Source: Octopus sinensis
Lineage: Eukaryota
Assembly (NCBI RefSeq): GCF_006345805.1
Contig: NW_021826031.1
Coordinates: forward strand, 1-64,000
DNA length: 64,000 nucleotides
Direction of reading: 5' to 3'
Shown: positions 1 through 55,980 of the stretch, piece after piece
Numbering within the stretch: position 1 is the stretch's first letter
How the letters are laid out: each line of letters starts with the position of its first letter
Position numbers and translations under genes: made by a program
The notes under the pieces: model-generated
What the model saw: the letters and a program-made list of their open reading frames with translations, nothing else
Told to the model about the DNA's origin: nothing
Databases searched by the model: none

Positions 1-480
1 AATGTTTCCCCGAGATAGCCATCTCACCTCAGTGTGGAATAACAAAGCCTTTCCATCCTTTTCAAATTCTTCGCAAATAAGTCTGAAAATGCGCGAATTT
101 AAAGCACTCTTTTTAATATAATTTATGATATGTACGACATCATCGAGAACATATCTTAAATCTGAAGGTAATGTTTTTGCAGCAAGTGCATATCGATGTA
201 GCATACAATGCATATGTTTCGTATCCTGGTTAGCAAGTCTAACTTGGCCTCTAAAGCCAGAATGAAAGCCAAGCATTGCTGGAGCTCCATCGGTTGTGCA
301 ACAACATACATTATTCCAAGATAACCCAACACTGTCAAAAAACATAGAAATTGCTTGAAAAATATCTTCTCCTTTAGTGGTAAAACCATCTTACCCCTTC
401 TAAGCTTGCGTTTTAAAATTTTCAATAAACATTGGTTAGCAATTTTTTTAACGACCACTGTACCATATGAGTACACTCCA
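1..480 (-). mobile_element. Buster/SCAND3-ZBED8-like hAT transposase remnant (duplicate of 12756-13235)
   Basis: Same sequence as the hAT at 11812-13235; encodes the TDGAPAM, HCMLHR and HTEVRWLSRG-adjacent region. Confidence 0.85.
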
Positions 481-3038: not shown

Positions 3039-3375
3039 TACATGGGAATAATTATCTTGAATTTAGGGAATTCTATTTTTGTTTAGAATCCTAAAGACAA
3101 GTTCTCTCATTGCAACTCCCATTTCAACAAAATGTGATCAGGTGCTCAATAGTGATTATTCGCGGTGGCGAAATTAAGTCGTCAGCTGCATTCATATAGA
3201 TCTTTGTAGATAATATGCCATTAAATAATCAGAGTCGGGACACACTTTGTGCAATCTACAGTAGCTAATGAATTTGTAAAATACGTGAGGGCACGACAAT
3301 AAATATTGGCATCATTGTCCAAAGTAATAAGGCTGATATCTTTGTTCTGAATAAGACAAATAACTATAATTTTAA

Positions 3376-6300
3376 GGGGATCAGTTTGAAATATTTCTGG
3401 ATAATTGCGCTTTTTACAGCTCGTCTAAAACCTTTTTCTCTACTCTATTCTGGCGTTTTAAAATTTTCAGCAAAGAGGGTGTAATTAAAAAGATCCTACT
3501 CAGTTCCCCACGTGTGTGATATCAATCAAGCTCATTTTTTCAGTGGATCAGTTTGAAATATTTTAGGATAATTTGCGCTTTTTACAGCTCGTCTAAAACC
3601 TTTTTATATACTCTATTCTGGCTTTTTAAAATTTTCAGCAAGATTTGCGTAATTATAAAGATCTTACTCAGTTCTCCACGTGTGTGATATCAATCGAGCT
3701 ATTTTTTCAGGGGATCAGTTTGAAATATTTCTGGATAATATGCGCTTTTTACAGCTCGTCTAAAAACTTTTTATCTACTCTATTCTGGCGTTTTAAAATT
3801 TTTAGCAAGATTTGCGTGATTATAAAGATCCCTACTCAGTTCTCCACGTGTGGGATATCAATCGAGCTCATTTTTTCAGGGGATCAGTTTGAAATATTTT
3901 AGGATAATTTGCGCTTTTTACAGCTCGTCTAAAACCTTTTTATATACTCTATTCTGGCTTTTTAAAATTTTCAGCAAGATTTGCGTAATTATAAAGATCC
4001 CTACTCAGTTCTCCACGTGTGTGATATCAATCAAGCTCATTTTTTCAGGGGATCAGTTTGAAATATTTCTGGATATATGCGCTTATTACAGCTCGTCTAA
4101 AACCTTTTTATCTACTCTATTCTGGCGTTTTAAAATTTTCATCAAGATTTGCGTAATTATAAAGATCTTACTCAGTTCTCCACGTGTGTGATATCAATCG
4201 AGCTCATTTTTTCAGGGGATCAGTTTGAAATATTTCTGGATAATATGCGCTTTTTACAGCTCGTCTAAAACCTTTTTATCTACTCTATTCTGGCGTTTTA
4301 AAATTTTTAGCAAGATTGCTTGATTATAAAGATCCCTACTCAGTTCTCCACGTGTGTGATATCAATCGAGCTCATTTTTTCAGGGGATCAGTTTGAAATA
4401 TTTTAGGATAATTTGCGCTTTTTACAGCTCGTCTAAAACCTTTTTATATACTCTATTCTGGCTTTTTAAAATTTTCAGCAAGATTTGCGTAATTATAAAG
4501 ATCCCTACTCAGTTCTCCACGTGTGTGATATCAATCAAGCTCATTTTTTCAGGGGATCAGTTTGAAATATTTCTGGATAATATGCGCTTTTTACAGCTCG
4601 TCTAAAACCTTTTTATCTACTCTATTCTGGCGTTTTAAAATTTTCATCAAGATTTGCGTAATTATAAAGATCCCTACTCAGTTCTCCACGTGTGTGATAT
4701 CAATCGAGCTCATTTTTTCAGGGGATCATTTTGAAATATTTCTGGATAATATGCGCTTTTTACAGCTCGTCTAAAACCTTTTTATATACTCTATTCTGGC
4801 TTTTTAAAATTTTCAGCAAGATTTGCGTAATTATAAAGATCTTACTCAGTTCTCCACGTGTGTGATATCAATCGAGCTCATTTTTTCAGGGGATCAGTTT
4901 GAAATATTTCTGGATAATATGCGCTTTTTACAGCTCGTCTAAAAACTTTTTATCTACTCTATTCTGGCGTTTTAAAATTTTTAGCAAGATTTGCGTGATT
5001 ATAAAGATCCCTACTCAGTTCTCCACGTGTGGGATATCAATCGAGCTGATTTTTTCAGGGGATCAGTTTGAAATATTTCTGGATAATATGCGCTTTTTAC
5101 AGCTCGTCTAAAACCTTTTTCTCTACTCTATTCTGGCGTTTTAAAATTTTCAGCAAGATTTGGGTAATTATAAAGATCCCTACTCAGTTCTCCACGTGTG
5201 TGATATCAATCGAGCTCATTTTTTCAGGGGATCAGTTTGAAATATTTTAGGATAATTTGCGCTTTTTACAGCTCGTCTAAAACCTTTTTATATACTCTAT
5301 TCTGGCTTTTTAAAATTTCAGCAAGATTTGCGTAATTATAAAGATCCCTACTCAGTTCTCCACGTGTGTGATATCAATCGAGCTCATTTTTTCAGGGGAT
5401 CAGTTTGAAATATTTTAGGATAATATGCGCTTTTTACAGCTCGTCTAAAACCTTTTTATATACTCTATTCTGGCTTTTTAAAATTTTCAGCAAGATTTGC
5501 GTATTATAAAGATCTTACTCAGTTCTCCACTGTGTGATATCAATCGAGCGCATTTTTTCAAGGGATCAGTTTGAAATATTTCTGGATAATATGCGCTTTT
5601 TACAGCTCGTCTAAAAACTTTTTATCTACTCTATTCTGGCGTTTTAAAATTTTTAGCAAGATTTGCGTGATTATAAAGATCCCTACTCAGTTCTCCACGT
5701 GTGTGATATCAATCGAGCTCATTTTTTCAGGGGATCAGTTTGAAATATTTCTGGATAATATGCGCTTTTTACAGCTCGTCTAAAACCTTTTTATATACTC
5801 TATTCTGGCTTTTTAAAATTTTCAGCAAGATTTGCGTAATTAAAAAGATCCCTACTCAGTTCTCCACGTGTGTGATATCAATCGAGCTCATTTTTTCAGG
5901 GGATCAGTTTGAAATATTTTAGGATAATTTGCGCTTTTTACAGCTCGTCTAAAACCTTTTTATATACTCTATTCTGGCTTTTTAAAATTTTCAGCAAGAT
6001 TTGCGTAATTATAAAGATCCCTACTCAGTTCTCCACGTGTGTGATATCAATCAAGCTCATTTTTTCAGGGGATCAGTTTGAAATATTTCTGGATAATTTG
6101 CGCTTTTTACAGCTCGTCTAAAACCTTTTTATATACTCTATTCTGGCTTTTTAAAATTTTCAGCAAGATTTGCGTAATTAAAAAGATCCCTACTCAGTTC
6201 TCCACGTGTGTAATATCAATCAAGCTCATTTTTTCAGTGGATCAGTTTGAAATATTTTAGGATAATTTCGCTTTTTACAGCTCGTCTAAAACCTTTTTAT

Positions 6301-6552
6301 ATACTCTATTCTGGCTTTTTAAAATTTTTAGCAAGATTTGCGTAATTATAAGATCCCTACTCAGTTCTCCACGTGTGTGATATCAATCAAGCTCATTTTT
6401 CAGCGGATCAGTTTGAAATATTTCTGGATAATTTGCGCTTTTTACAGCTCGTCTAAAACCTTTTTATATACTCTATTCTGGCTTTTTAAAATTTTCAGCA
6501 AGATTTGGGTAATTATAAAGATCCCTACTCGGTTCTCCACGTGTGTGATATC
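3376..6552. repeat. 169-bp tandem satellite, left arm (about 19 units)
   Basis: Unit gatcagtttgaaatatttctggataat...ctccacgtgtgtgatatcaatcgagctcattttttcagggg. Repeated ORF starts are spaced 169 bp apart (4393/4562; 5571/5740/5909/6078). Confidence 0.99.
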
Positions 6553-8329
6553 TAGGGCAATTTAAGTTAAAAAAGTTAAAATATATGAAAATGTGTATTT
6601 TGGCTTAAAAGTAAAAATAAAGTATTTTTTAAATGAAATAGTTACTTATTAAAGAAAAAAATAAAGTTAAAAAGTTAAAAAAAATTTTTTATAAAGTTAA
6701 AAATTTTAACTTTATTTAAAATAGCGCGTGGGTGTTTAGTATGCCAAGAACTGCAAAAACAATGTATTTTAAGGCAAAAAAAATTGTTATTGAATATCCG
6801 CTGGAGTTTTTATTACGAGAGAATGGCGAGTTGCAATGTCAACTTTGCTTATGCACAGTCAGGTGTGAGAAAAAGCATTTTGTGAATTCTCACCGAGAAT
6901 CGAAGAAGCACTCAAATTTATTAAGTTTTACAAATTAATATAATTTTTAGAGAATAATTTCTATCAGCCTTGTTTGGACGAGTTACCCAATGATGACTGG
7001 TCAATGCAAGTCACTAAAGCATTTATTCAATGCGATATACCCTTGCATAAATTGACTATGCCTCCTCTAAAGAATTTATTCAAGAATACTTCTTTGCCTC
7101 TTCCTTCCCAATACAAAGCAAGAATGTGCGTTAAACAATTGAAAACTGAATATATTGTATTATTTCAAGAAAAGTTTAGGTTTATGAATATATAATTTTT
7201 TAGAAATCAACTTGTATTCGCCATAAGTGACGAGGTCACTATTCGTAGTCAAAAATTTGTTGCAGTTTTAATGGGGATACTTAAAAATCCCGATAAAACT
7301 TATTTGATTTCTTTCGTAAAAATTGATAAAACTTCTACCAAAGAAACAATTATTCAAATTGTTGACGATACGATTAAATGCGTTTTAATTGAAAGACAAA
7401 ATTTCCTTCTCCTAATAACAGATTCCGCTAAATATATGCTAGCAGGTTTTAATTTAACATATAATTATAGCTGGAAAGTTCTTAAGCTTTTATATCCAAG
7501 GTTATTTCACGTAACTTGTGTTGCTCATCTGATGCATAATTGTTCAATGAAAATCAGGACTATTTATCCTGAAATTGATTCTCTTATTGCATCAATTCAA
7601 GCGGCAATAACAAAAAATAACAAGAGAAAACGACTATTTACGAAATTGGAATTCCACCTCATGTAGTTTTAACTAGATGGGGTACTTGGCTAACTGCTGC
7701 ATTTTATTATGCAAAAAATTTAATACATGTGATAAACATTTTCAAAACAATTCCTGATGATGGAATCATTGTTCAGGCTGCAAAAAATAGCCTAAGAGAT
7801 GAATCTCTAGTAAAAAGCTTAAGTTCTATTGTTAGAAATTATTCGACAATTCCAGGTAAAACTAGTTTAATAATAGCAGAATTATTGTGCAAATTTGAAA
7901 GTTCTCACTCCTCAATAGAGTTAGCTTACAATGAGCTAAAGAATTTAAAATTTGACGACGAATCAGATATAATTGAAAAATATTTGAATGAACGATTACA
8001 AAAAAATGATTTATGTCAAATTATAAGAATGACAAATTCATCAATTTCTCCTGAAGAATATTGTATGCTTTTAAAGTGTCAGCCTTCATCCTCTTCCATA
8101 GAACGATGCTTCTCTCAAATTAAAAACTTTATGAGGGATAACAGAAATTTTAATATTGAAAATATAGAGAATTATGTTATATGTTTGTATAATAAATGAT
8201 TCTTAAGTTAAAATTTGTTAGGTTAAAATTTTTGTTTTATAGGTTAAAATTTGGTTATTTTTAGGTTAAAAAGTTAAAATTTTTAGGTTAAAAAATCGAA
8301 GTTTTTAGGTTAAAAAAAAAATTGCCCTA
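6553..8329 (+). mobile_element. Full-length hAT-superfamily DNA transposon (CGGBP1-like zinc finger plus DDE transposase), 1777 bp
   Basis: TIR tagggcaattt/aaattgcccta with a perfect 8-bp TSD gtgatatc (6545-6552, 8330-8337). CDS 6741-8199: C2H2 finger CQLC..HRESKKH, ISDE, ITDSAKYM, HVTCVAHLMHN, TRWGTW, SIERCFS. Introns at 6925-6950, 7180-7203, 7446-7470 and probably 7856-7876/7879; two 1-bp deletions. Confidence 0.95.
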
Positions 8330-9159
8330 GTGATATCAATCGAGCTCATTTTTTCAGGGAATCAGTTTGAAATATTTCTGGATAATATGCGCTTATTACA
8401 GCTCGTCTAAAACCTTTTTATCTACTCTATTCTGGCGTTTTAAAATTTTCAGCAAGATTTGCGTAATTATAAAGATCCCTACTCAGTTCTCCACGTGTGT
8501 GATATCAATCGAGCTCATTTTTTCAGGGGATCAGTTTGAAATATTTCTGGATAATATGCGCTTTTTATAGCTCGTCTAAAACCTATTTATCTACTCTATT
8601 CTGGCGTTTTAAAATTTTCAGCAAGATTTGCGTAATTATAAAGATCCCTACTCAGTTCTCCACGTGTGTGATATCAATCGAGCTCATTTTTTCAGGGGAT
8701 CAGTTTGACATATTTCTGGATAATATGCGCTTTTTACAGCTCGTCTAAAACCTTTTTATCTACTCTATTCTGGCGTTTTAAAATTTTCAGCAAGATTTGC
8801 GTAATTATAAAGATCCCTACTCAGTTCTCCACGTGTGTGATATCAATCGAGCTCATTTTTTCAGGGGATCAGTTTTCATATTTCTGGATAATATGCCGCT
8901 TTTTACAGCTCGTCTAAAACCTTTTTATCTACTCTATTCTGGCTTTTTAAAATTTTCAGCAAGATTTGCGTAATTATAAAGATCCCTACTCAGTTCTCCA
9001 CGTGTGTGATATCAATCGAGCTCATTTTTTCAGGGGATCAGTTTGACATATTTCTGGATAATATGCGCTTTTTACAGCTCGTCTAAAACCTTTTTATCTA
9101 CTCTATTCTGGCGTTTTAAAATTTTCTGCTAGATTTGCGTAATTATAAAGATCCCTACT
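8330..9159. repeat. 169-bp tandem satellite, right arm (about 5 units)
   Basis: The array resumes in register after the TSD; ORF starts at 8367/8536/8705 are spaced 169 bp apart. Confidence 0.98.
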
Positions 9160-11811: not shown

Positions 11812-13235
11812 CAGTGGTTCTCAACCTTTTTTTTCCGCGGACCCCTTGTGAGTAAATGAAAAATTTCGCGGACCCCCTACATATTTATTAAGTTTTTTGT
11901 CAAAAAAATTTTATTTATCTAAAAACAAAATTTATTATTAAATCAATAGAGAAAATTAGTGAGAAGGTTGATATTGTTTTTTCGAGGCAATTTTTTAAAT
12001 AAGAGGCTCGGTTGTCGACAAGCAAACCCTGATGTCATCTTCAATATTCAGTCTTGCGCGATGATTATTTTTTATATTGAGAAGTGCTGAGAAGCCATGT
12101 TCGCATAAATATGTTGTCGGGAATATAAGCAACAAATTTAATGCATTTGCGCTTACGGAAGGATAATGCTTATACATTTCGCACCAAAATCTTGATAAGG
12201 CAAGTTTTTCATACAAATCTTTTGCGTTTGAATTATTGATCATGTCAACAAAAGCCTCTTCGATATTTTCATCGACCAAACGTGAATCAACACTGAATGG
12301 TGTACGAATGAATTTCAAATCAATTTCGTTCAATTCTGGAAAGTATTTATTTACTTCTTGTTGAAGATATGTTAAATGCGCATAAATAAGTTCGGTTATT
12401 TTTTTGATTTCAAATGCATGTATATTTACAGATTGTTCTTCAAAAGATTCAAACATAGTAAAATTATTTAGTTTTACTTTTTCTTTCCACAGTGTTAACT
12501 TCATCAAAAAAGCACTAATAATTAATATGAAACAGTTAACAAACTTATTTTATCCACAAAATAAATTATTGTTTCATGTCTTCCCTGAAGCGATTTGTTG
12601 AGTGAATTTATACGAGAGAAGACATCTCTCAAGTAAGCAAGTTTAGATAGTCATGAACTATCCATTAATTTCGAAATAAATTCCGATGATTTGGAATTGT
12701 TTTCGCGAATAAAATATTCAGATAATTCATTCCTCAAAGAAAAAACTCTGGCAAGAATGTTTCCCCGAGATAGCCATCTCACCTCAGTGTGGAATAACAA
12801 AGCCTTTCCATCCTTTTCAAATTCTTCGCAAATAAGTCTGAAAATGCGCGAATTTAAAGCACTCTTTTTAATATAATTTATGATATGTACGACATCATCG
12901 AGAACATATCTTAAATCTGAAGGTAATGTTTTTGCAGCAAGTGCATATCGATGTAGCATACAATGCATATGTTTCGTATCCTGGTTAGCAAGTCTAACTT
13001 GGCCTCTAAAGCCAGAATGAAAGCCAAGCATTGCTGGAGCTCCATCGGTTGTGCAACAACATACATTATTCCAAGATAACCCAACACTGTCAAAAAACAT
13101 AGAAATTGCTTGAAAAATATCTTCTCCTTTAGTGGTAAAACCATCTTACCCCTTCTAAGCTTGCGTTTTAAAATTTTCAATAAACATTGGTTAGCAATTT
13201 TTTTAACGACCACTGTACCATATGAGTACACTCCA
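11812..13235 (-). mobile_element. Buster/SCAND3-ZBED8-like hAT transposon, 3' half, degenerate
   Basis: TIR cagtggttctcaacc at 11812, preceded by aaataacc (central TA). TDGAPAM, HCMLHR, HTEVRWLSRG, KLAYL.DVF, FPTTYLCEHGFS. A conserved Trp is mutated to TGA; 30-nt intron at 12515-12544. Confidence 0.92.
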
Positions 13236-20424: not shown

Positions 20425-20702
20425 CAACCTATAATACTATCATCACTTTATCTTAATTTGTTTATTTTGGAGAATATTATTTTTAGTCCTTTTTGTGTCG
20501 ATTAGAACTATTTTGTGAATAGTCATACTTGATCATGGAAAAAGTGACTCAATTTAAATTCTTCCGTACCAGCTTTCTTATCGGACTTGATCTGACAGTT
20601 TTAAATTATAAACTATAATTTTAATAAATTTTATTGAAAAAAATACATTTATAAAACCTATTTTAGAAATTTAATATAAAATTTTTTTAATTGGATTTAA
20701 AT

Positions 20703-21335
20703 ATGCCGATGTTAAGAAAAAAGGGTACTTTTAGATTGTGGGAGTTCATTTTGGCAATTTTGAAGGATCAGAGATATATAAACATAATTTACTGGAGTGG
20801 TGAGAGAGAATTTACATTTTTGGATGCTGAAATGGTTGCCCAATTTTGGGGACTTCAGAAGAAAAAAAAGCAAATGAACTACAAAAAACTCAGTCGTTCT
20901 CTCAGGCATTACTACCGGAAAAATATTATGATTAAAGTTCCAGGAAGAAATTTTGTCTACAGATTTCATCCTCAAGCAAACATTAAACTCAATCTCAATG
21001 ATTACAATAAACTAGTTGAATTCCAAGATTTGTCAAACACATTTTATTGTCTTAAATCAGAAAATTCGGAGATATCTCCAAACGACGAAAATAATTATAA
21101 AACTGAAAAGCCGTCCAAATTTCTGTCTTTAATAAAAACATGTCAATTTTTACCATCTTCAGCTGAGTCACTAAATTTCAACAAATCCAAAAATTCTTTT
21201 AATGATTTTCTAATACTTCCCTGGTGTCCTTCTTTACCTAATCTTGATTTTCCGTTTTCTGTTTCTCCGTTTACACCCAGTCCACTATTGCTTTCTTCTG
21301 TTTTCCGATTCGACGTGGTACAGTTTACAAATTAG
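20703..21335 (+). CDS. ETS-domain transcription factor (N-terminal ETS, single exon)
   Basis: LWEFILAIL..IIYW..F..AEMVAQFWG..K..MNYKKLSRSLRHYY..KVPG..VYRF. Confidence 0.93.
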   Translation: MPMLRKKGTFRLWEFILAILKDQRYINIIYWSGEREFTFLDAEMVAQFWGLQKKKKQMNYKKLSRSLRHYYRKNIMIKVPGRNFVYRFHPQANIKLNLNDYNKLVEFQDLSNTFYCLKSENSEISPNDENNYKTEKPSKFLSLIKTCQFLPSSAESLNFNKSKNSFNDFLILPWCPSLPNLDFPFSVSPFTPSPLLLSSVFRFDVVQFTN

Positions 21336-22682: not shown

Positions 22683-23697
22683 ATGGTTATGTCGCAGTAT
22701 CTACCATCAGAGAAATCGTTAAAGGGAATTGTAGCGGGTTGTTATTTTAGTGTCTGATTTATTTAGGTGGAATAACCGGGGGAATTGAAATATGTATTAC
22801 CTACCCTACCGAGTATATAAAGACACAACTACAACTCGACCAGAAAACCTTCGGCGACCGAAAATACAAAGGAATCATAGACTGTGGGAAGCAAACAGTA
22901 AAAGAATTCGGAGTTCGGGGACTCTACCGCGGACTGCCAATTCTAGTTTACGGCTCAATCCCCAAGTCTGCGACGAGATTCGGGACTTTTGAGGAAATCA
23001 AGAAAAGGAGAATGTCTTCGGACGGGACACTATCCCCACTCAACCGACTATTTTGTGGACTTTGTATGACTGCAGTACAACATTTCAGGCGCGGGTGTCT
23101 CCGAGGCTATTTTTGCAGTGACTCCAATGGAAACAATTAAAGTCAAGTTTATCGACGACCAAACGTCCAAAACACCAAGATTCCGCGGGTTTTTCCACGG
23201 AATTGGGCAAATCGTCAAGTCGGAGGGTTAAATTTGTGATGACGACGCAGGTCTGTGGGGATTGTACAAAGGACTGACCCCCACGATAATGAAGCAGGGA
23301 TCCAATCAGGCAATACGTTTTTACGTCATGGAGAGTCTCAAAGACTGGTACCGCAAATGGCGGGGTGATACGACTCCGAATCAGCCAATTAATAAACTCC
23401 TCATTGGGCTTATGGGTGGACTTGCTGGGACATGTTCGGTCTACGGAAATACTCCCCTCGATGTCATCAAAACACGCATGCAAAGTATAGATTCTCATAA
23501 ATACAAAAATTTTTTTGACTGCTTCACTCAAATTCTCCGCAATGAAGGCATTTTTGCGTTTACAGTGTTTTTTGACGTTCAGGTTTTATAAGGGCACCGT
23601 CCCTCGGCTGAGTCGAGTGGCTCTCGATGTGGGGATCACTTTTATGCTTTATGATACAATTATGGAGTACTTCAACATAATTTGGAAGACTGATTAG
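22683..23697 (+). CDS. SLC25A1: Mitochondrial tricarboxylate (citrate) carrier
   Basis: [71 protein letters not shown]; 4 micro-introns. Confidence 0.96.
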
Positions 23698-25240
23698 TTC
23701 TATTATCTGGCTTACTTTTTTCGATTTAATTATTTGTCTAGTCATACATTTCATGATGATTGTGCGTTGTCATTATGACTATTTGTAGATCAAATATAAT
23801 CCATCAACTTTTCTATTTTCTGATCAACTTTTCTAAATGATCTTTTTTATTAATATTATGTCACTTTCCCGATCAGACTGTACAAAAGTCTTCTTAACGA
23901 CAAGCGTTTAAAGGTGAAAGGAACAAAAACATTTGACTTACTTATAGTTTTTGCATTTTTATTTTTTCTGTACATTTGAATTGTACAGAGAAATATTAAA
24001 TCCAAAGTCCTCAGGACTTTTTAGAAGCTTGGTTAACCCGGATATTAGCTGAAACGTGGCTGAAACATGGGAATAGCTTTCTACAATTGGGAAAGTTATT
24101 CTCATATTTGTAGGATAAAAACATTTTAATGGTCTATTGAAACCGGGCGAAGTGGCATTGAGGGAATGTCATTTTGTGTGTAACTTCCGCCAACTCGTTT
24201 ATTTGAGTCGTTATCATGTGACCAACGATCGGTTAATCTGAGGGCCCTTTGTTGGGCCTCCTCGTTTTGCCTCCTGTTGGACAACGATAACTGCGGACAC
24301 CATGATCCGCAGGCGTAGGAAATTGATGGTTCGAAGTATTGGCGGTAGATATTCACCAGTACCGGGTGTGACCCGTTTTTCCATAAGTCGGATAGATTTC
24401 GGAGGATGTTCAACTTTTTCGCATTTACGAAGAAGGTTGTCTGCGTGCGAGGAGAAGCAGAGGTGCATGTTGAGAGTTACCCATAGGACCGTCTGACTCC
24501 TGTAGAAAGGTACAGACATTTTATTCAGCTTTAAATCGACTGAAATCCTTCCCAATCTTTTGTCGGAAGTGAAGAGGGACGTGGCGGACTTCGCGACGTT
24601 TACCACAAGCCGGTTGTCCGTCAGCCATAGGTTCAGCCGATCAAGTTAGCTTGGAGCCTTTCAGAGGCCCTCTCGATATCCCGTGAGGCTATTACGATGT
24701 CGTCCGCGTATGAGAGGACAATGTCATTATTGTCGAGGGAGATCTTCCAGGAATAGGTTGAAAAGGGCCGGGGATAAGGGGGATCCCTGGGTACTCCGTT
24801 GGGTAGGAGACGAGATGTGGACTTGAGAACACCGAGGCACATCCTTCCTCTTCGTCCACTTAGGAAGTTGGTGATCCATATTTTGAGTTTCTGAGGAAAT
24901 TCAGATTGGAATATCTTCCTTGATAGAAGCTTCCTCGAGACAGAGTCGAAGGCTTTGTGAATGTCAACGGAGCAAAGCACGGTCTTTTGGTGCCTCGGTT
25001 TGCTAGCAAAACCGGTACAGATGAAATTCGACAATGATTGTAAGTACGAAGACGTGGACTTTGCCTCCTTGAACCCATGTTGAAAAGGTCTTTCGGGTAA
25101 GAATTCTTCTATTCTTACAAGAACCAGTCTTTCCAGGATTTTTGACATCGAACATAACAGAGAAATTGGCCTGAAAGATGCCGGGCCACCTTTTGGTTTT
25201 CCAGGCTTCAGTATCGGTCTTATTAAGGCCTGTTTTTATA

Positions 25241-27019
25241 CAGTATAACCTCCATTTGGGGCATCAATTTTGAAAAATTGCCCCAAAAATAGAGGTTTTC
25301 CCAAAAATGGAGGTCTGAAATTTTCTTTATTTTTATAAAAATTTTAATAGTTTTAGCATATTTTTCATTAATTTATAAATAAATAAAGTATTTTTAAGAA
25401 CATTTAAACATGTTTTCCACTAATTTTATTGATAATTAGAGTATTTTCAAGCAGAAAAAATTTTTATTCTATTATACACGAAAATAATCTGTTATTTTGT
25501 TTCCTGTTGCAGATTTCTTCATATGTATGCCAATATTTTTCTGAAATTGTAATAGTCTTTTAACGCATCGGAAAACAACGGTGATATTCTCTTCAAGGTT
25601 ATTCATTGCTGTTATCGTGTCCAAGTGTGAACAGTTGCATTCAGTTTGGTCATATATTGACTCATCATTATTTTCTTCTTCATTTTCAGCAATTACGTCT
25701 GCAATTATCGTGTCCAAATTTTCTTTCTCACTGTTAACTAAAAAATTTGAACTAGGAATCTGTTGCCGACAGTTATTAATTGTTTCCCAACAATTCGTTA
25801 TTGTTTCAGGATTTAAATTTTGCCATGTTTTTCCAACAATTATTATGACATGACGAAGATTTATTTTTTTTAAATTAACAATTTGTAACTCAACGTCCTC
25901 AAAATAAAGAGTAAAATCCAATAAAGCGTTAAGATAATTGGACTTGAAAGATTTAATAATACCCATGTCTAACGGTTGAATTAATGAGGTTGTTTTTTTG
26001 GGAGAAAAAACAATTCAATGTTGGAAAGATGGATATATTTGTGACAGCTTGCGTTATCAAGTAACAAAACAATTTTTCTCTTTTGCGTAATCATTTGTTC
26101 ATTTGTAATGGTGAGCCATGTAATAAATATTTCTGATGTCATCCAACTGTTTTTAGATGATGAATATGAAACTCCATGTTCTTCAGGGTTAAAGTTTTTC
26201 ATACAACGTGGGGATTTATATTTTCCTACTAACAATGGCTTCAATTTTTCGCCACAAGCACTGACCGACAAAAAAATAGTGAATTTTTCTTTACTCCTTT
26301 TAATTCCGAAACAATCTTCATCCGAACTTACAAATGATTTTGAAGGTATCCTTTTAATATATAACCCAGTTTCGTCGCAATTAAAAATATTTTGAAGACC
26401 ATATTCTTTTACGTATTCATCATACTTGGAAAAAAACATATCAAGCGAAGAAACATCGGAAGAGTTTTTCTCTCCACTAATTGTCTTAAATGACAACATA
26501 TGTCTTTTCTTAATTTTTCAACCAGCCATTGGACCTTTGAACGCCGAATAATTCAACATCCTTGCTACTTTGGAAGCAATATTTTTTAAAGAGGACCGGA
26601 CACAGGAATAAATTCTTCCCTGTCTTGGTGAAAGCCTCAAACTTACATTAATAAAAAAACTTTACTAATTTTGTACTTATCTACAATATCTCGTTCAGTA
26701 AGATGTTTATTTTCACTTAATTCCTTGGCAATTTTGATCTTTAACTCAAGACTAAGCTTACGAGCCATAACAACAAGAATACAAAAATTACACGAGGCTT
26801 CCAAATGAAATTTTATATAATTAATTTTAATTTTAATAGCAAATATGTATATAAATTAAAAATCCTGTGCCCCACTAGAGGTTCCGGTAATTTCTAAATT
26901 TGGAAATTACCGCATAAATTATATCCTTTTCAAACCTACAAACTAACCCAAAAATAGAGGTTTCCCCAAAAATAGAGGTTCCCCAAGCCAGAGGTCTGCC
27001 CCAAATGGAGGTTATACTG
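25241..27019 (-). mobile_element. pogo/Tigger DNA transposon (CENP-B HTH plus DDE_1), frameshifted
   Basis: Perfect 23-bp TIR cagtataacctccatttggggca with TA duplication; NCDETG, NSWMT, LLLDNA.CH, QPLDMGIIKSFK. Confidence 0.95.
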
Positions 27020-27371: not shown

Positions 27372-28900
27372 TTATAGTTTTAATTTGTGAAAGAAATTAT
27401 GTATTGCTACTACAATGATCACAACACCCGAAATAATTGACATCATCACAGACAAGACGAATCCGGGATGAGTAATTAAATTCACTCGAGACTCTACAAT
27501 ATTATACGCTGCATTTCACCTGGGACATAAATATACCCCACTGCTGGGGTGGACTGTCCTGCAGAATTTGTAGCAACCACGGCGACACTATAATTTCCAG
27601 CTTCCTGGGTGTAATTCGAGATATCCAAAAATGTTTGATCGGGTTCCAATATGAAGCATAATTTTTTCTTGGCTTTTTATATCAGAATTTAAACTTGAGA
27701 AGAATTGAGGCAGAGAGTGTATTCTGTTATATTTTCTCCGTTGTCGTTGGGGACAGTCCAGGTGATTAGACTCTCATCAATGTTGATTTGGAATATTCCG
27801 GGAACGGCTAGATTTATAACCAATTCATAACATACCAGAAACTCTAAATATTTTCGAAATCTCTTTCTCGTCATATCCATTATCTGCGATACACGACACT
27901 TTGTGGTGGGCACGCGAGGTCCCTTCAAGTTTGATAGCCATCAATTCGATTGAGTAGTGCCCAGTTTTAGTTGAATTTCGAAAATAAATCTGATTAATAT
28001 TTTTATAAAAGATGACTTTTTTATGTGTATCATTTACTAGCATCCGAACAGTCGAGGAAGGTATCGAGGATACACTGCATATGATTATTCCAGAGTGTCT
28101 TGATTCATCCGACTTGAGTTGTATTTCTGGTCCGTCTGCAAATTGGCAGGAAAATATACATTTAATAATTAATTTTATTTCTCTCGATTTTTGAAACGAG
28201 TTATATGTAGCCCCGTTTATTAGGTATGTTCCCGCGTCCTCTGGTTTTGTGACTTTGATATTTAGTCCGTCAGATTGTATTTTTGTTTTGTTAGTGTTTT
28301 CTACAATGGGCGATGATTTATAACCAAGAACATATGCATCCTTTACCCAGAATATAGTCCCATTTACATTCTCAAACACAACTGCACATTTGAGTTTCGC
28401 ATCTTGTCCCACATAAACAACACTGTTCTCAGTACAATTAATAAATTTGATAAGTTCGGCTGCAATAAACAAGTTAGCTTACATTTTAGATGAAGAGAAA
28501 ATGTTTTTGTCTTATTGTCTTGTGACACACAAACGTACTCCCCCACAGTGTTTGGCGTTACTTTATTTATATACAAGACGAGACTGTCTCTACTGCCATA
28601 CAAAGTGTAGATTTTGCTAAAAAACTTCAAGTTGCTGTACTTGGTCGATATTGTTGTATCGTTCATTTTCCAAATCAGTTCTGTGTCGCCCTGAACAACG
28701 GTGCATTTGACATGTGCAGAATCGTTTAATTCTGCATAGAAGGAAGTAATGCTGAGATCAATCAGACTGGATGACTGTACTATTATTGGGTAATTAGTCG
28801 GCCATTGTGTTTTAAATATTTTCATTACAGTTGTATATAACATTATTTAATTCTCTCTATACTCACCGACTGCGATTATCAATCCTACCAACAGGAGCAT
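27372..28900 (-). CDS. Ig-superfamily type I membrane protein (signal peptide, about 3 Ig domains, Fn3, TM, roughly 9-aa tail)
   Basis: MLLLVGLIIAV; KCTVV..LIWKM..GEYVC; LKCAV..FWVKD..EDAGTY; Fn3 ITWTVPNDNG..ITEY..YSVAVVATNSAGQS; TM FVLSVMMSIISGVVIIVVAI. Confidence 0.82.
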
Positions 28901-36177: not shown

Positions 36178-37383
36178 TTAGTAAAAATCGACGTTATCAA
36201 AATCAATTGGAGGGAGTTCTTTTATGACAATGTTTGACGCACAGGGTGTCTCAACACGAGTAGCCTCATCACGCAGAGTGACCTCACTATCTATATCTTC
36301 AAGCCTTGCTCCAATCGGCAACTTTGCCCAGTAACTTGATGTCCAATCATTTAAATGTTGTCTGATTTCCTTCAATTGGTCTTCTTCAAGTCCAAAAAGA
36401 GACACCACAGAGGCAGTCCTTAACAGTAGTTGGGGTAGTCAGCAAACTCGCCAACAAATCACAAGACAAACAGTCTTGAGAACCCGAAAAAAGCAGGTAA
36501 TAAAGTCGGCAAGACTCGACGACTCGCCACCGAAGACAAAATGCGCTCAATGAAGTAGATCAGCAACTGTGAATGAGTGGCGAGAAGAACGAGAATTGGT
36601 TCCCACTTTTCGAAACACGTTTCTCCAGTTAAGAATGTGCCAAATTCTGATAGTCCGCGGAATATCGCGGAAATTAGTGAGTCAACAAACTGAAAACTAG
36701 GAGACTGACACAACTGGGAAACCGAGAGGCAGCCCCATCGATATATTTCGCAAACAGTGCTACATCACACTTCCCACTGACTTTCCAAAATTCTGCCAAC
36801 TTGTCATCTACTTCCCCCAAAAGAGGCGGTTTTGAAGACTCCCGAATCCGTTTAGTAAACAAAGCGGAGGCAGGTTCCCAGTAGTGTTTCTATTGGGTGG
36901 CATCACGACTACTACTCTGAGCCATCCAAGACTCTCGTCCACTCCAATGAGGATGACGTCGGAGGATGGAAGCATCCCGTGAGTCACGTCGTGTCTGATT
37001 TGGACGACCCAATCGGGAATGTGCAGTTTTCTACAGCGTTCCACGAGTGACGAGCTGAGTTTTCCTTTGAGTCGTTCACTCATTAAATTGACGAATCGGA
37101 CTATGGCCGTTCCGCAGGCGAGTTGGTGCATTAGGTTTGCTTGCTGTGGACGGTTTTGCACGACGGTGAGGAGATTTATTGTCGAGTCGATGGCCACAGG
37201 CAGTTTGTCGTTCATTCTGCATTTTATAAAGTTGCGAACCTTGTTTTCCACACAAGCAGTCGATCCAGGCCATGTTTCACGAGTTGTGCATCTTTAGACC
37301 AGAGCTCGTTGGAAATATTGACGAATTCTAATCTTAAAACTCACAGTTAATGCAAACTCGTCAATCCACGCCACGACTTTCAT
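36178..37383 (-). CDS. LAS1L: Las1-like rRNA ITS2 endonuclease
   Basis: MKVVAW.., LPVAIDST, AIVRFVN, IPDWVVQIRHDVTHGMLPS (HEPN R-x4-H motif), WLR..YW. Confidence 0.9.
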
Positions 37384-38099: not shown

Positions 38100-39441
38100 A
38101 ATTGCAATAAATCGTCAGGTGGTGTTGTGGGACGACTATATAACGACTCCATCAACTTACGTACGATACCTAATATATGGAAAAACTCCCTAATTACGCC
38201 AATCCTAAAGCCTGGGAAACCAAAGGATGCCCCCTCTTCATACCGCCCAATCTCAATAACTTGTATCTTATCGAAAGTACTGGAAAAGCTCGTATTAATG
38301 CGAATCTCTCCTGTCCTACAACTGCCAGAATTCCAGCACGGTTTTAGACCAGACCGTTCCACAACGACCCACTTGTGTTCTGTCTCCCAGTTTATCACTG
38401 AGGGTTTTAACATGCGAACACACCTACGGACGGCCTTAGTATCTATTGATATACAAAAGGCTTTTGATTCTGTCCCGAGGAAACTCCTAACGCGGAAAAT
38501 ATTTGATTCGAACTTACATCCGAACATCAAACTGTGGTTGGAAAATTTCTTAACTGGCCGACGCGGAAGGGTCCGTATCGACAATACTACTTCAAGATCA
38601 AGACTACTGCCCAATGGTGTCCCACAAGGCTCCCCTTTATCTCCTCTCCTTTTTAACCTATTTCTACATGACCTACCCATTACTAATGACCCAGACATAT
38701 TGTTCCTATCCTATGCGGACGATCTGATTATCGCTGCAAGAGATAAATCTCCTTCTGTGGCTGTCGCAATGGTCCAGTCACACCTCAACCGTGTATGTGA
38801 TTGGCTATCTGCAAACATGTTGTGTGTGTCTGCATCTAAATCCCAATTCACCCTCTTTACTACTGATAGAAGATTCAAGAATGGGCTGGAACTATTCATT
38901 GGAGACAAACCTATTCCCTCTTCGCGTACCCAGAAGATCCTTGGCGTGGTGTTCGACTCCTTAATGACGTTCTCAAGTCACGTAGAGGAGGCCCTAGCTA
39001 AAGGTCTTCGGAAGTGGAACGTCTTGAAAGCTCTGTTAAAGAAGAGTCCCTTCCCCCTGAAAGATTGTGTCAGCAAAGTCTACCAACAAGTGATTGCCCC
39101 GACGGTTGAGTATGCCTGCTCAGCCTGGAGGTTTGCAATTGCTGTTGGACGTGAGCGCATTGTTGATGAAGAAAGTAAGACATTTGGAAACTTGTATCCT
39201 AGCTGACTTTGGAATGCGAAGGGGGATTTTCAAAGAACTTCGGAAGCTGGACAAGTTGATGAGGAATGAGTTGACATCAAATTGATGAGCACTAGCACTA
39301 GTTGGCTCTTTAGAGGGTTCAGGGGAGCCAGGGGGTGAGATGCAGTTCGGGAGAAGGCATGAGGGGCACGCCCATTTTGTGATAGCAGATGCAGTTTTTT
39401 TACTCAACTTGACACATTAAAGGTCGATTGAATGAATGAAT
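38100..39441 (+). mobile_element. LINE (APE-type) RT fragment, same family as 24110-27295
   Basis: 359-aa ORF: ILKPGKP..YRPIS, QHGFRP, DIQKAFDSV, GVPQGSPLSPLLFN, SYADD; (gaat)3 tail at 39430-39441. Confidence 0.93.
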
Positions 39442-39454
39442 GCTTCCATCGATT

Positions 39455-39930
39455 AGTTGGAAAATTACTTTTGTCTGCTATATTTTTTTTCACCAGAAAT
39501 GGTTTTAAAAACCAGATTATGTCTCTTCTTAAATCTGTCTAACCAACCGTTTGAGGCTTTAAAAGATGTTCGAGAATCCAATTTTGTCAATATTTTTTTT
39601 TCGATGGCTTTGATTAATGTACCCGAAATAGAAAAGGAATTTTCCCTCAATCGACGAAAAGCATTAAAAGTTAATTCGTCAAGTTTTTCAAATTGATTTA
39701 TTTCATTAGAAACTTGTTGAACTTCATCTATTTGAACTAATCTTGAAATGACTGATCCGGTATTAATGAAAGAAGAAATTTCTTGTTTCTTGAAGGAGAA
39801 TTATTTTCATTTTTTCTCTGATCTTGTTTCTCATAACAAAATAAATCAAAATATATTCAAGACAAGAAAATGTCTTGTTTCTTGAAGGAGAATTATTTGG
39901 AATTTTTCTTTGATCTTGATCCGGTATTAA
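39455..39930 (-). mobile_element. pogo/Tigger HTH remnant; a related 5' end lies at about 41260-41352
   Basis: ISGTLIK..FKASNGWLDRFKKRHNLVFKTISGEK; the subterminal motif ttcttgaa.gagaattattt recurs near 39790, 39880 and 41297. Confidence 0.75.
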
Positions 39931-40500: not shown

Positions 40501-41447
40501 GTAAATAAAACTTTTTAAACAAAGAAGCCAATTTTAACTAAAACGAAAACAATTAATAAAAGTTTGCGACTTTTTCTTGTTCGGATTTTGGATAAAAAGA
40601 ACGTTTAAAATGGTCACGTCCATACACAAATTCTGTGCAGCGAATATGCTGAGGATAGATCCCTTCAAGCAGAATAGTACTTGGGGAGGCTCTTCTGATA
40701 AGACGACCACAAAGGCAGCATCTTTCAGGGCCTTCATCACTGAATGTAGCTGCTGTAACTCTTTTCTTGAGAAGGCCTTTGGCCTTCAATACCTCTTTTA
40801 AGGATGGTGACAACATATGTTGAATTTCGGGACTTTCAAAGGTAAATTTGCATCGCGGGGATTCCAACTTTTTATGAATTTTCATAAGTTCTTCATACGT
40901 ATAATCTAGCAGTGTTATTACTAAAAATTAACTGTGCTTGGCACCGTCAAAAAACCCCTCTCCAGAAACTTTCTTCATGTCTTCAAGCTTAACATCTATC
41001 AGTGTAATTAATAAAAATCTACAGTCAAAATTTAAGAACATTTAACAAGAATATCACCACAATGACGGAAATAAAATTTATTTTATTTCAATTAAAAAAT
41101 AATAAACTTAAAAATAATTTTAACAAATTAAAATATATTCACTTAATGGTTTATTTAATCTTTGTATACTTTGAAAATCGCAAAAAAAGTTATATTAAAA
41201 ACCGATGTTTTGACCAATTCATTGCCTTTTTGATAAAAAATATTTACAATTACAAAATAAATCAAAATATGTTCAAAACAAGAAAATGTCTTGTTTCTTG
41301 AACGAGAATTATTTTCAATTTTTCTTTGATCTTGTTTCTCATAACCATACTGAAATTTGAGACGCTGCCATCTTTGAAGTTAGCCATAACCTTACGCCGT
41401 GATTAAAGTGATATTTATAAATGTTTCCGCGTGTTTAATGGATAAAA

Positions 41448-42229
41448 ATGTTTCAACTGGTCGTTTAGAATTTTATAATTTTGTTTTAGAATCCTACAAG
41501 TTTTACAACCGTGGTTGCAATTCCTTATTTGGGAGGTGTTGTTCTGGCATCAGATACAAGAGTGACTCGTTCTTTAAATAATCCCGACGAAAGCTGTAAT
41601 GAAATTTTGTATTAAAATATTAGATTCTGATAATAACTATAAAATTTTCCAGATTGCCAATAACGCGATCATTGGTTTTACTGGGAACATGAATGTTTTT
41701 GAATTCATAAAGGAAGAATGTTCTCGTAGTTTTCAGTATTTTTTAAATTAATTTGTTTTCTAGAAAGTCTTGGAATGTATATCCTATGTTTTTAGAAGAT
41801 TTCATTAAAAAAATTCTGTCAAATTTTATACTTCCGCATCAATTATCGGTATATTTGAGTTCTTGTTATATTTTTAGAAAGTTATTCTGTTATGTGTACT
41901 GAATGGACGAATGTATCAATTTGTGATAGATTCCTTCACAAGTATAGAATGTATGTGGTGTCACGTAACGACCATCGGCTCGGGCTCAATAAGCGCGCTT
42001 TCTTTAATCAATAATCAGTATTTTCTTTTATAATCATTGCCAGTTATCGTGGAATTTTTACAACGGAAAGTGAGGCTATTTGGTTAGCCCACAATTCAAT
42101 AAAACATGCGGCACAATATGATAGACTCACTGGAGGCTTTTCTAATAGTATATTTGCATATATAATACTTTAGTTTACACCATCTCGAATTTTGGAATCA
42201 ACTGTGTCGGCCTTTTTCAGCTTTTTTGA
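41448..42229 (+). CDS. Highly divergent 20S proteasome beta-type subunit, 7 exons (absent from the ORF track)
   Basis: MFQLNPTSF-TTVVAIPYLGGVVLASDTRVT..YKIFQIANNAIIGFTG..TIGSGS..YDRLTGGFSNIYTIS..; six GT-AG introns of 26-30 nt give one continuous frame. Confidence 0.85.
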
Positions 42230-48289: not shown

Positions 48290-49604
48290 CTAGACTAGTT
48301 CGGAGGCTATGATAGAGTGACAAAAGTACCGTCCATGGGCATTTCGGTGATCTCGGTGGAGTAGAACTGTTCAATGTCACGGAGAATGATCATTTCGTCG
48401 TTGGTGACAAAATTAATGGACAATCCCTTTCGGCCGAACCGCCCAGCCCTCCCAATGCGGTGAATATAAGTTTCCCTGGACTGAGGAAGGTCGTAGTTGA
48501 CGACCAACGAGATCTGCTGAATGTCCAACCCCCGAGACCACAAATCGGTGGAGACCAGCACTCGGGTCTCCAAACAACGGAAGGACTTCATCAGTTCCTC
48601 TCTCTCCTTCTGGGGAGTGTCCCCGTGCATGTACGTCACCGCAAAGTTGTTTTTGACGAGTTTGTCGGCCAACCACTCAACCTGGCATGAGGAGGGGGGT
48701 CACCTTGGCCCGGGAGTTGCAGAAGATGACAGCCTGGGAGACGATGAGTGTGTCGTAAATGTCGATGAGGTGTCGAACTTGCACGGCTCGTTGCCCACGT
48801 TGATGAAGTACTGGGATATCTCGTCCAGAGTCAGTTCGTCTCTCTTGACCAGAATACGGAGAGGGTTGGTCATGAACTTGCAGGTCAGGTGAAGCACATC
48901 GGGCAGCATAGTGGCCGACACAATGACCACCTGTGTCTGTGGTGGCAGAGACCGGTATATCTCGTATATTTGCGGCTTAAAGTCTGGGAGGTCAGCAGAG
49001 GACATACTATCACTCAACATCTGGTCGGCCTCGTCAATAACGAACAACTTGAGAGCAGACGTGTTCAAATACCCGCGGGTGATCATGTCTGAATGAACAC
49101 ACCCCCTACCTATCACTCTCCCCGGAGTCCCCGACACAATGTGCTGTCCTTCCCCGAACTTGCGAATGTCCTCCCCGATGGACGTCCCCCCAATGCAGGC
49201 GTGGGCACGCAGATTCTTGTAGGAGCCGAGTGCCAGACACACCTGGAATGATGACACACTCACTCGCTGGATTTGTTGTGCCAATTCCCGTGTGGGGGAG
49301 AGAACGATGACTTGGGGGTCCTTGAACTTGATGTCCACGCAGTTGACAGCCCCAATGCAGAAGGCGGATGTCTTGCCCGTCCCCGATTGAGCTCTACGAT
49401 GGAGGGGTGGGTGTACTGGGCTATTATGTCTCTCCCCGCTATCATCGAGTGAATGAGGCCTTTCTGCACTGTGGAGGGCTTATCCATTCCGTATGCATAT
49501 ATTCCTCGCAGGATTTGAGGGTTTATGTTCATTTTGTCAAACGTCTGGACGAATACCACATCTTCGCTCGTTTCAAAAATATCCTCAGTCTTGTTAAAAC
49601 TCAT
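48290..49604 (-). CDS. EIF4A3: DEAD-box helicase eIF4A-III-like (one apparent 1-bp deletion near 48773)
   Basis: N-terminal [53 protein letters not shown]. Confidence 0.85.
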
Positions 49605-54225: not shown

Positions 54226-55980
54226 ATGCCTAAATTTTCAGATTTTAATCTCGATCTGCGAATATTAAAAGTGTCAAAATTGGTTGTTGTATTGACAGGG
54301 AATAGAAGACCTCGGATGGGCCGAGCCAACCCCAATCCAAGAAAAGATAATTTCATTTTGTGGTGAAGGAAGGGACATTGTGGCTCGAGCCTGCACTGGG
54401 TCAGGAAAGACAGGCGCATTCCTCCTCCCCATCATCCAATCAACCCTCTCCACAGTTGGCCACCCAAATCACCCCAAAGTGTCACTCTGATGACATAATC
54501 GGGATTGTTTTGTGCCCCACGAAGGAAATATCCCACCAAACACACAAATTCCTCAAGAAAATGTGCAAATATGCAGAAAGAGTGACCTCAGTCAACCTCT
54601 CGGACGACACAAGTGTGGAATCCCAGGAGTATGTCCTCGTCCCCTATTTAAGGTCGTTGCTGACGAACTACAAGCCGAATATAATAATATCGACATACAA
54701 GCCTCTACTCCACCATTTGCACTCCCAAAATATCCAAATCAACCAATCCTTCAGGATTTGGGCAATCGACGAGGCCGATCTGTGTCTGGCACTCCCACAC
54801 AGGAGAAGGAAGATCATAGAACTGAAGAACACGTATTTCAGAGACCCCCACCAGGTTATTCTGACCTCGGCCACGGTCGGCCGGGAGTCGTATCGACACT
54901 TTCCACTCAAAAACCCCGTGATTCTGAATTTGAATCGGTCTAATCTGCCACCCCCGTCCCAACTATCGCAATATGTCCTGAGTTGTGGGAATAAGGAGAA
55001 ATATCAAGTTCTGGTGGCCCTCCTGAAGCTGCGGATAATCAACGAGAGACTGCTAATCTTCCTCAATTCAGTAGAAAAGTGTTACAGGTCTGCATAACTC
55101 ATTACCCAAGACTGAAACTACTTTTGGAGCAGTTTGCCATTCGTAGTTGTGTGCTGAATGCTCAACTCCCCTTGGCCTGCAGGCAAGTCACGATTATTGA
55201 CGTGGCAGGATTAATGCTGTCGAACAATTCAACGAGAGAAAGTACGACATTGTCATTGCCTCGGGGGATTCCCTCAAGTTGGTGTCTGATTGTATTGGAG
55301 GGCGGGGAAGGAGGAGGAGTACAGCATGACCCGCGGGGTTGACTTCCTGGGGGTTGCCTACGTTCTCAATTTTGATTTCCCCCCTTCTTACACGTCCTAT
55401 GTCCATCGAGTGGGAAGGTACCCCATTGACACGAGTGTCAGAACTGCCCGGATGAATAGCAAAGGAGTGGCCGTCTCGTTTGTGTGTCCGAGGGAGATGG
55501 ACTTGCTCGAGGGAGTCACTGCGGAGATGGGGAGGGGGACTATTGTGCCCTACCCATTCAAAATGGAGGACATTTCCGGCTTTCGATACCGAGTTCTGTC
55601 CGCATTGGCAACCGTCACGAATTCGGCAGTGAAGGAGGCACGACTTGGGGAAATTAGAGCTGAGATTTTAAATTCAGAGAAGCTTACAGTTTTGTGTTTT
55701 GTGAGTGTAGAGTTTCTTGGAAGAAAGGAGTCGTGCTATGACCAAGTTGAGACACGACAAGCCATCGGGGAAGATGCCACCCAAAGTTAAGCATATGCCT
55801 GAATATATTCGTGAGTTTTGAATTATTATTTAGTCCCCTCCGGATATAAACACGTCAATCAAAAGAATATTTTTTCAAAGAAGAAAAGAAAAAGAAATGC
55901 GCATTTCCGTTCAGTATTCAGCTTTTCTTACGCACTAGAATAAAACCAATGTCCTTAAAACCTTGAAAATAACTAAATGA
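54226..55980 (+). CDS. DDX56: DEAD-box helicase DDX56/Dbp9
   Basis: FSDFNLDLRILK, PTPIQ, TGSGKT, CPTKE, DEAD, SAT, RGVDF, YVHRVGRTAR, FRYR..VKEARL.EI..EILNSEKL, LRHD, HMPEY. Confidence 0.95.

Follow-up and report, generated by a model that had tools for sequence, protein, structure and literature searches.

The question raised by this locus is whether a proteasome beta-type gene that has drifted very far from all known subunits encodes an additional, specialised subunit, the organism's only subunit of its kind, or a dead copy. The gene lies on the forward strand at positions 41448-42229 of the first 64,000 nucleotides (nt) of contig NW_021826031.1 (assembly GCF_006345805.1, Octopus sinensis); this whole 64-kb stretch is called the window below. 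It is a real and intact beta-type gene of family PF00227. In our judgement the chances are about even that it encodes a beta5-derived, catalytic-type, lineage-specific beta subunit of the 20S proteasome with a non-canonical way of activation. In the following we set out the gene model and the catalytic residues, the distance from known subunits, the lineage, and finally the residue in front of the catalytic threonine.

We rebuilt the gene independently and obtained seven exons and six introns, each intron bounded by GT..AG; coordinates and peptide are identical to those of an earlier note, which a model had made from the letters of this DNA. The coding sequence of 615 nt closes with a TGA stop and gives 204 amino acids, starting with MFQLNPTSF and continuing with TTVVAIPYLGGVVLASDTR. 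The protein carries no C-terminal extension and ends 14 residues past the Pfam domain. Lists of open reading frames (ORFs) miss the gene because its exons measure only 12-140 nt: no ORF of more than 60 codons exists on the plus strand of 41448-42229, so the gene is as invisible in the ORF track as the earlier note described. Only one in-frame ATG can be joined to exon 2 by splicing, and it forms the putative exon 1; read-through of intron 1 into exon 2 is excluded by an in-frame TAG at the 3' end of the intron. Alternative splice sites were also considered. The acceptor 41652/41653 yields a stop or removes Lys33, the donor 41568/41569 requires a 55-nt intron and shifts the lysine to position 28, and the donor 41462/41463, 3 nt downstream of the one chosen, merely lengthens the leader from 9 to 10 residues. 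The residue preceding the catalytic Thr1, a phenylalanine termed Phe(-1) here, is retained under every one of these models. That the gene model is an artefact, with exons joined by eye and a proteasome likeness due to chance, we find scarcely credible. Two points would suit an artefact: taken singly, the exons are insignificant in tblastn (E ~0.1), and the first of them measures no more than 12 nt. Against this, a blind tblastn of the window with canonical beta5 recovers three colinear exons of the locus, the full-length protein matches PF00227 at an E value of 2.5e-13, its exons all keep the right order and phase, and the intron lengths and GTA..AG ends are like those of the eIF4A3 gene in the same window (21-24 nt) and close to the dicyemid median of 27 nt (PMC6543705).

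Does the gene still encode an enzyme? The match to PF00227, the proteasome subunit family (MEROPS T1), reaches 50.5 bits (gathering cutoff 22.4 bits) and places residues 10-190 on model positions 5-189 of 189. The residue register was taken from HMMER and MAFFT alignments to solved beta5 chains (8adn_K and yeast beta5). These alignments bear out the earlier claim that Thr1, Asp17 and Arg19 are in register, that Lys33 follows a four-residue insertion and that a Gly-Ser-Gly motif is present. In active beta subunits, catalysis involves a Thr1-Lys33-Asp17 triad, an oxyanion hole and a proton relay of Ser129, Asp166 and Ser169 (PMC4792962; PMC8665760). By alignment, the candidate possesses the triad that marks the active beta1/beta2/beta5 class, the Gly47 of the oxyanion hole and the Ser129/Asp166/Ser169 network, in which position 169 is a threonine and the hydroxyl is retained. 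About ten catalytic or oxyanion residues are all kept in an alignment of 25-30% identity; the inactive subunits beta3, beta4, beta6 and beta7 lose catalytic residues. Because these residues persist at so low an identity, in an intact and correctly phased frame of seven exons, the sequence argues for selection on catalysis.

The same features bear on the possibility that the gene is a duplicate which is silent, decaying or no longer catalytic; it would be untranscribed or, with Phe(-1) blocking removal of the leader, at most a structural member of the ring. We regard this as improbable. The retained active-site residues speak against it, as do the 204 stop-free codons in AT-rich DNA (chance probability ~4e-7 at this base composition), the six intact introns with correct phases and a GC content that is well above that of the introns (0.35 in the exons vs 0.19). 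A dead copy would fit with the embedding of the gene among transposon fragments (reverse transcriptase of a long interspersed nuclear element (LINE), pogo and local repeats) and with a GC content at third codon positions (GC3) near the low end of the window, though above that of the transposons. One further observation could be counted in its favour: a word-indexed search of 5.8 billion proteins returned no match to the candidate at E<=0.001 or at E<=10. Nor did exact searching bring up an identical entry for two variants of the leader or for five ORFs of the window. The absence of the candidate is uninformative on expression, since the organism's own proteins, such as eIF4A3, are missing from the database too.

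Another question regards the subunit from which the gene descends. Among solved structures, a beta5 from the microsporidian Vairimorpha necatrix (8adn_K) comes closest, with 31.7 bits (E 1e-6) at 28-30% identity. The scores are 23-27 bits for other beta5 chains (25-30% identity for beta5 overall), 23-26.5 bits for beta2 chains (8adn_H 26.5; yeast 24.5) and 28 bits for a Plasmodium beta7, here over the N-terminal third only, and there is no beta1 chain among the best 60 solved-structure matches. True beta5 chains, in contrast, score 232-252 bits with each other: the microsporidian protein scores 252 bits with yeast beta5 (60% identity), 243 with human, 235-240 with beta5i (PSMB8) chains and 232-234 with other beta5 chains. 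Microsporidia are a notoriously fast-evolving lineage. With yeast, microsporidian beta5 retains 252 of the 438 bits of its self-score, whereas for the candidate the figure is about 7% of a beta5 self-score. Its divergence is roughly 8-fold greater in score than that of the microsporidian protein. The description of an extremely divergent proteasome beta-type gene holds.

Compared with constitutive beta5 (PSMB5/Pre2; 8adn chain K), the candidate has the PF00227 fold family and the catalytic residues in common, along with a similar mature length and the lack of a long C-terminal tail. Beta5 has a leader of 31 residues (8adn_K) or 74-75 residues (yeast), Gly(-1), Ser169 and no insertion, whereas the candidate has a leader of 9-10 residues, Phe(-1), Thr169 and the four extra residues SLNN. 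Positions 20, 35, 45 and 49 of the S1 substrate pocket are Ala, Ile, Met and Ala in the aligned yeast and V. necatrix beta5 chains; the pocket of the candidate is made of Val20, Asn31, Phe35, Phe45, Met49 and Glu53. Beta2 (PSMB7/Pup1), likewise of the active Thr1 type, scores nearly as well as beta5. It has a long C-terminal arm (PDB chains of 222-261 residues) and Gly45, while the candidate ends at residue 204 and has Phe45. From the best matches, the motifs KILSN and GG..N.Y shared with beta5 (L95, S96 and N97 being invariant with two beta5 chains) and the missing beta2-type arm, we lean weakly towards beta5 as the parent type. The product would be an N-terminal-nucleophile (Ntn) hydrolase of the Thr1 type, most likely beta5-derived; in sequence it lies far outside the range of the known beta5, beta2 and beta1 subunits.

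Could the protein instead work outside the 20S particle, as a stand-alone homo-oligomeric Ntn protease with rings like those of HslV or archaea? The archaeal 20S beta subunit resembles the candidate in its short leader, its mature protein of about 200 residues and a profile match over the full length (TIGR03634, model positions 2-182 of 185). The minimal build of the candidate, which has ~195 residues, no extensions and a leader of very few residues, would suit such an enzyme. Beyond the catalytic core, in the regions through which canonical subunits touch each other in the ring, it bears little similarity to them. We nonetheless rate this reading as very unlikely. The archaeal model scores 44.9 bits against a cutoff of 224 and the HslV model NF003964 11.3 bits against 137, while the bacterial beta model TIGR03690 reaches 31.7 bits against 191.9. 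The best pairwise matches are eukaryotic beta5 and beta2 chains rather than archaeal or HslV chains, and the presence of six spliceosomal introns points to a long past in eukaryotes. Moreover, we know of no eukaryotic cytosolic precedent for a stand-alone homo-oligomeric protease of this kind. As to the origin of the gene, we reject descent from HslV or archaea as well as horizontal transfer on the profile scores, the eukaryotic best matches and the six introns. A retrocopy is rejected on the introns, and a transposon-borne gene on the lack of enclosing terminal repeats.

Might the organism, rather than the gene, account for such a distance? The window holds ETS, immunoglobulin (Ig)-domain, phospholipase C, mitochondrial-carrier, eIF4A3, DEAD-box and LAS1-like genes next to hAT, pogo and LINE elements, and such a content points to an animal. 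The introns are 26-30 nt long in the candidate gene, and the neighbouring eIF4A3 gene has five of 21-24 nt. Among animals, introns this short have been reported only from dicyemids and from myxobolid myxozoans (PMC13644364; PMC6543705). The GC content of the window (~0.38) and its heavy repeat load are consistent with the genome of Dicyema japonicum (36.7% GC, 49% repeats including LINEs; PMC6736024). In the database of 5.8 billion proteins, no close relative of the eIF4A3 was found; the best matches are 58-67% identical, and the top one (P0001) is an internally duplicated artefact. The lack of a close match favours a dicyemid over a myxobolid, because the myxobolid Thelohanellus kitauei reportedly has an annotated proteome at NCBI. 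We infer that the DNA belongs to a fast-evolving animal with introns of 21-30 nt, probably a dicyemid, an animal of about 30 cells. Dicyemids show extremely high divergence (PMC6543705) and a reduced set of ~5,000 genes (PMC6736024; PMC6543705). No literature linking Dicyema to the proteasome was found; the proteasome is absent from the supplementary material to the genome paper on D. japonicum and from the main text of that on Dicyema sp. The eIF4A3 gene itself, which encodes the helicase of the exon junction complex, lies at 48307-49604 on the minus strand. Three of its five introns are in frame and free of stops, and the ORF list reads through them. Near 48,770 its reading frame appears to shift by 1 nt, between ...KFDT and LIDIYDTL...; the cause would be an indel of the assembly or else a genuine lesion in this essential gene.

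With such a host, the candidate could be the sole ortholog of beta5 (or of another active subunit), having diverged along with the whole proteasome of a fast-evolving, genome-reduced parasite. We take this explanation seriously, although we believe it to be unlikely. The lineage is indeed evolving very fast, as its eIF4A3 is 60% identical to a human fragment while the fungal protein is 70% identical and that of Schistosoma 86%. The extreme divergence and the small gene set of dicyemids make extra paralogs less likely a priori, an essential subunit would be required to keep all catalytic residues, as this one does, and no other proteasome gene or proteasome-like locus is available for comparison within the 64 kb (tblastn with canonical beta5). 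Several observations speak against a sole ortholog. Beta5 proteins of microsporidia, fungi, mammals and others stay at 232-252 bits and the candidate at 32 or fewer. The window's eIF4A3 scores 183 bits with the human protein despite three unspliced introns in the query, a retention comparable to that of microsporidian beta5. Scaling from the fungus-human eIF4A3 pair, with a yeast-human beta5 identity of about two thirds, we would expect an orthologous beta5 to be ~50-55% identical, compared with the 25-30% seen. The genome-wide rate alone seems insufficient for the divergence of the candidate. Additionally, the absence of Gly(-1), the leader of 9 residues, the four-residue insertion in the substrate-binding strand and Phe45/Met49 would all be unprecedented in a constitutive beta5.

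Codon usage offers a second comparison between ortholog and paralog. The GC3 of the candidate, 0.31, is on a par with the 0.31-0.33 of the ETS, Ig and PDZ genes and close to the 0.21-0.29 of the transposons. It differs from that of the adjacent housekeeping genes, which range over 0.44-0.70: eIF4A3 0.57-0.70, DEAD-box 0.58-0.60, an OGFOD1-like gene 0.59, LAS1 0.53 and the carrier 0.44-0.45. The low value hints that the candidate is not constitutively highly expressed. Taken together, the rate and GC3 comparisons lean towards a copy freed from the constraints of a constitutive subunit, so that a lineage-specific extra or specialised copy appears more likely than the organism's constitutive beta5. 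The split in GC3 runs through the window as a whole. On one side are 48307-49338, 54360-55790 and 36811-37293, and on the other 20691-21335, 27825-28472 and 41448-42229; developmental or tissue-type genes and transposons have values of 0.21-0.33, and the regional GC content (0.30-0.49) mirrors the split.

An unusual feature of the candidate lies directly in front of Thr1. Autolysis between Gly(-1) and Thr1 is, to our knowledge, regarded as universal for active proteasome beta subunits, and we know of no active subunit with Phe at this position. Here the residue is Phe and not Gly, just as the earlier note had read it. The codon (TTT) lies inside exon 2 and is kept even with the sole AG further upstream as acceptor, so it does not depend on the accuracy of the 12-nt first exon. 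The placement of Gly(-1) has been described as decisive for autolysis (PMC4792962), which again counts in favour of a dead copy. A free amine on Thr1 is required for catalysis, and removal of the leader is therefore necessary for an active enzyme. Other Ntn hydrolases do cleave themselves after residues other than Gly. Glycosylasparaginase, Taspase1 and gamma-glutamyltranspeptidase self-process in this way, and the N-to-O acyl shift at an X-Thr bond needs no Gly. These enzymes belong to other families and folds of the Ntn superfamily and have no sequence relationship with the candidate, and what they offer is only an analogy of mechanism for a possible cleavage of Phe(-1)-Thr1.

How could such a protein work? 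The core of ~195 residues would adopt the normal beta-subunit fold and take a seat in the beta ring. Removal of the leader of 9-10 residues would then free the amine of Thr1, probably without following the canonical geometry, given that the residue at -1 is Phe. Speculatively, the leader might be lost by slow autolysis in an altered geometry, or else be cut in trans, after the Phe, by another active site of chymotrypsin-like preference. Thr1-Lys33-Asp17 could subsequently cleave peptides together with Gly47 and Ser129-Asp166-Thr169. If neither route operated, the protein would be a catalytically dead member of the ring. The bulky residues of S1 and the four-residue insertion before Lys33 suggest a narrower hydrophobic pocket and an altered specificity, and the cleavage preference would differ from that of beta5 because S1 is rebuilt (Val20, Phe35, Phe45, Met49, Glu53) and four residues are added.

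Duplicates of active subunits with specialised roles are known from vertebrates (beta5i, PSMB8; beta5t, PSMB11) and from Drosophila, which has testis-specific beta paralogs, and beta5 is the subunit most often duplicated for specialisation. If the candidate were an extra copy, the logic would be the same, namely duplication of a catalytic subunit, a change in its S1 pocket and its use in an alternative 20S particle. The duplicates known so far have stayed near their parent subunits (PSMB8 scores 235-240 bits with microsporidian beta5) and keep Gly(-1); the candidate does neither. Several points weigh against a beta5-derived, lineage-specific catalytic subunit. With Phe(-1), the leader might never come off, which would leave a dead site. 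What separates beta5 from beta2 as the parent type is a difference of about 5 bits plus two short motifs. The lineage evolves so fast that a sole ortholog could be unusually diverged, and the codon argument is weak, as GC3 tracks the regional GC content and the gene sits in AT-rich transposon debris. A more specific version, in which the gene is an additional subunit activated without Gly(-1)-Thr1 autolysis, with a rebuilt S1 and acting in an alternative 20S or as a free-standing Ntn protease, in a dicyemid or another parasite with ultra-short introns, is offered as a tentative and rather doubtful proposal. The exons, introns and residues on which the argument for a lineage-specific catalytic subunit draws are collected in Table 1.

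Table 1. Parts of the candidate beta gene and positions of its catalytic, insertion and pocket residues (numbering of the window; residue names follow mature beta5 numbering, with precursor numbers where given).
Feature	Position	Strand	Details
Exon 1 (predicted)	41448..41459	+	ATG TTT CAA CTG = MFQL; start of the 9-residue leader
Intron 1	41460..41489	+	30 nt, GTCGTT..TTTTAG
Exon 2	41490..41595	+	NPTSF, then TTVVAIPYLGGVVLASDTRVTRSLNNPDES
Phe(-1)	41502-41504	+	TTT codon, exon 2
Thr1	41505-41507	+	Precursor T10, exon 2
Asp17	41553-41555	+	Precursor D26, exon 2
Arg19	41559-41561	+	Precursor R28, exon 2
SLNN four-residue insertion	41571-41582	+	Exon 2, ahead of Lys33
Intron 2	41596..41623	+	28 nt, GTAATG..TATTAG
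Exon 3	41624..41735	+	(Y)SDNNYKIFQIANNAIIGFTGNMNVFEFIKEECSRSF(Q)
Lys33	41641-41643	+	Precursor K46, exon 3
Phe45	41677-41679	+	Exon 3
Gly47	41683-41685	+	Precursor G60, exon 3
Met49	41689-41691	+	Exon 3
Intron 3	41736..41763	+	28 nt, GTATTT..TTCTAG
Exon 4	41764..41848	+	KSWNVYPMFLEDFIKKILSNFILPHQLS; contains the beta5-like KILSN helix motif
Intron 4	41849..41877	+	29 nt, GTATAT..TTTTAG
Exon 5	41878..42017	+	KVILLCVLNGRMYQFVIDSFTSIECMWCHVTTIGSGSISALSLINN
Gly128-Ser129-Gly130	41977-41985	+	Precursor G139-S140-G141, exon 5
Intron 5	42018..42043	+	26 nt, GTATTT..TGCCAG
Exon 6	42044..42147	+	(H)YRGIFTTESEAIWLAHNSIKHAAQYDRLTGGFSN
Asp166	42120-42122	+	Precursor D178, exon 6
Thr169	42129-42131	+	Precursor T181, exon 6; position usually Ser
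Gly170	42132-42134	+	Precursor G182, exon 6
Intron 6	42148..42173	+	26 nt, GTATAT..CTTTAG
Exon 7	42174..42229	+	(I)YTISNFGINCVGLFQLF, then TGA at 42227-42229

The surroundings of the gene are rich in repeats. An 86-nt direct repeat occurs at 39741-39826, 39833-39918 and 41249-41334, the third copy being 93% identical to the second. It contains an internal palindrome (AAGAAAATGTCTTGTTTCTT), and its last copy ends ~115 nt upstream of the ATG of the candidate; the repeat may represent the end of a transposon or have a regulatory function. A 169-bp satellite forms two blocks, one at 3370-6552 (18.9 copies, 94% matches) and one at 8330-9159 (4.9 copies, 97% matches), which flank the hAT-like ORF at 7729-8199. 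Transposon ORFs were found at 1-390 (-), 12654-13145 (-), 7729-8199 (+), 11995-12507 (-), 24633-25148 (-), 25472-26499 (-) and 38127-39206 (+). The hAT-like transposase ORFs at the start of the window and at 12.6-13.1 kb have identical peptides, and the window also contains a pair of pogo/Tigger-like DDE ORFs and two ORFs for reverse transcriptases of LINE type. The candidate gene has LINE fragments on one side and pogo fragments on the other. At 22751-23588 (+) there are two exons of a mitochondrial carrier; its solved relatives are only ADP/ATP carriers and uncoupling proteins, and we take it to resemble the citrate/tricarboxylate carrier SLC25A1. No tRNA genes and no Rfam families at gathering score were found in the 64-kb window.

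Few eukaryotic proteins are under tighter constraint than the active beta subunits of the proteasome. Genes such as this one are a warning for annotation, as exons of 12-140 nt separated by introns of 26-30 nt evade both ORF-based and similarity-based approaches. Should the candidate prove to be the sole beta5 of its organism, no beta5 known to date would be as diverged, and the case would bear on how a complex of 28 subunits co-evolves under extreme rates. If, on the other hand, it is a lineage-specific catalytic subunit with non-canonical activation, it would be a natural experiment on the requirements for proteasome maturation and specificity, and would add one of the few examples of a specialised proteasome from beyond vertebrates and flies, here from an animal of ~30 cells and ~5,000 genes.

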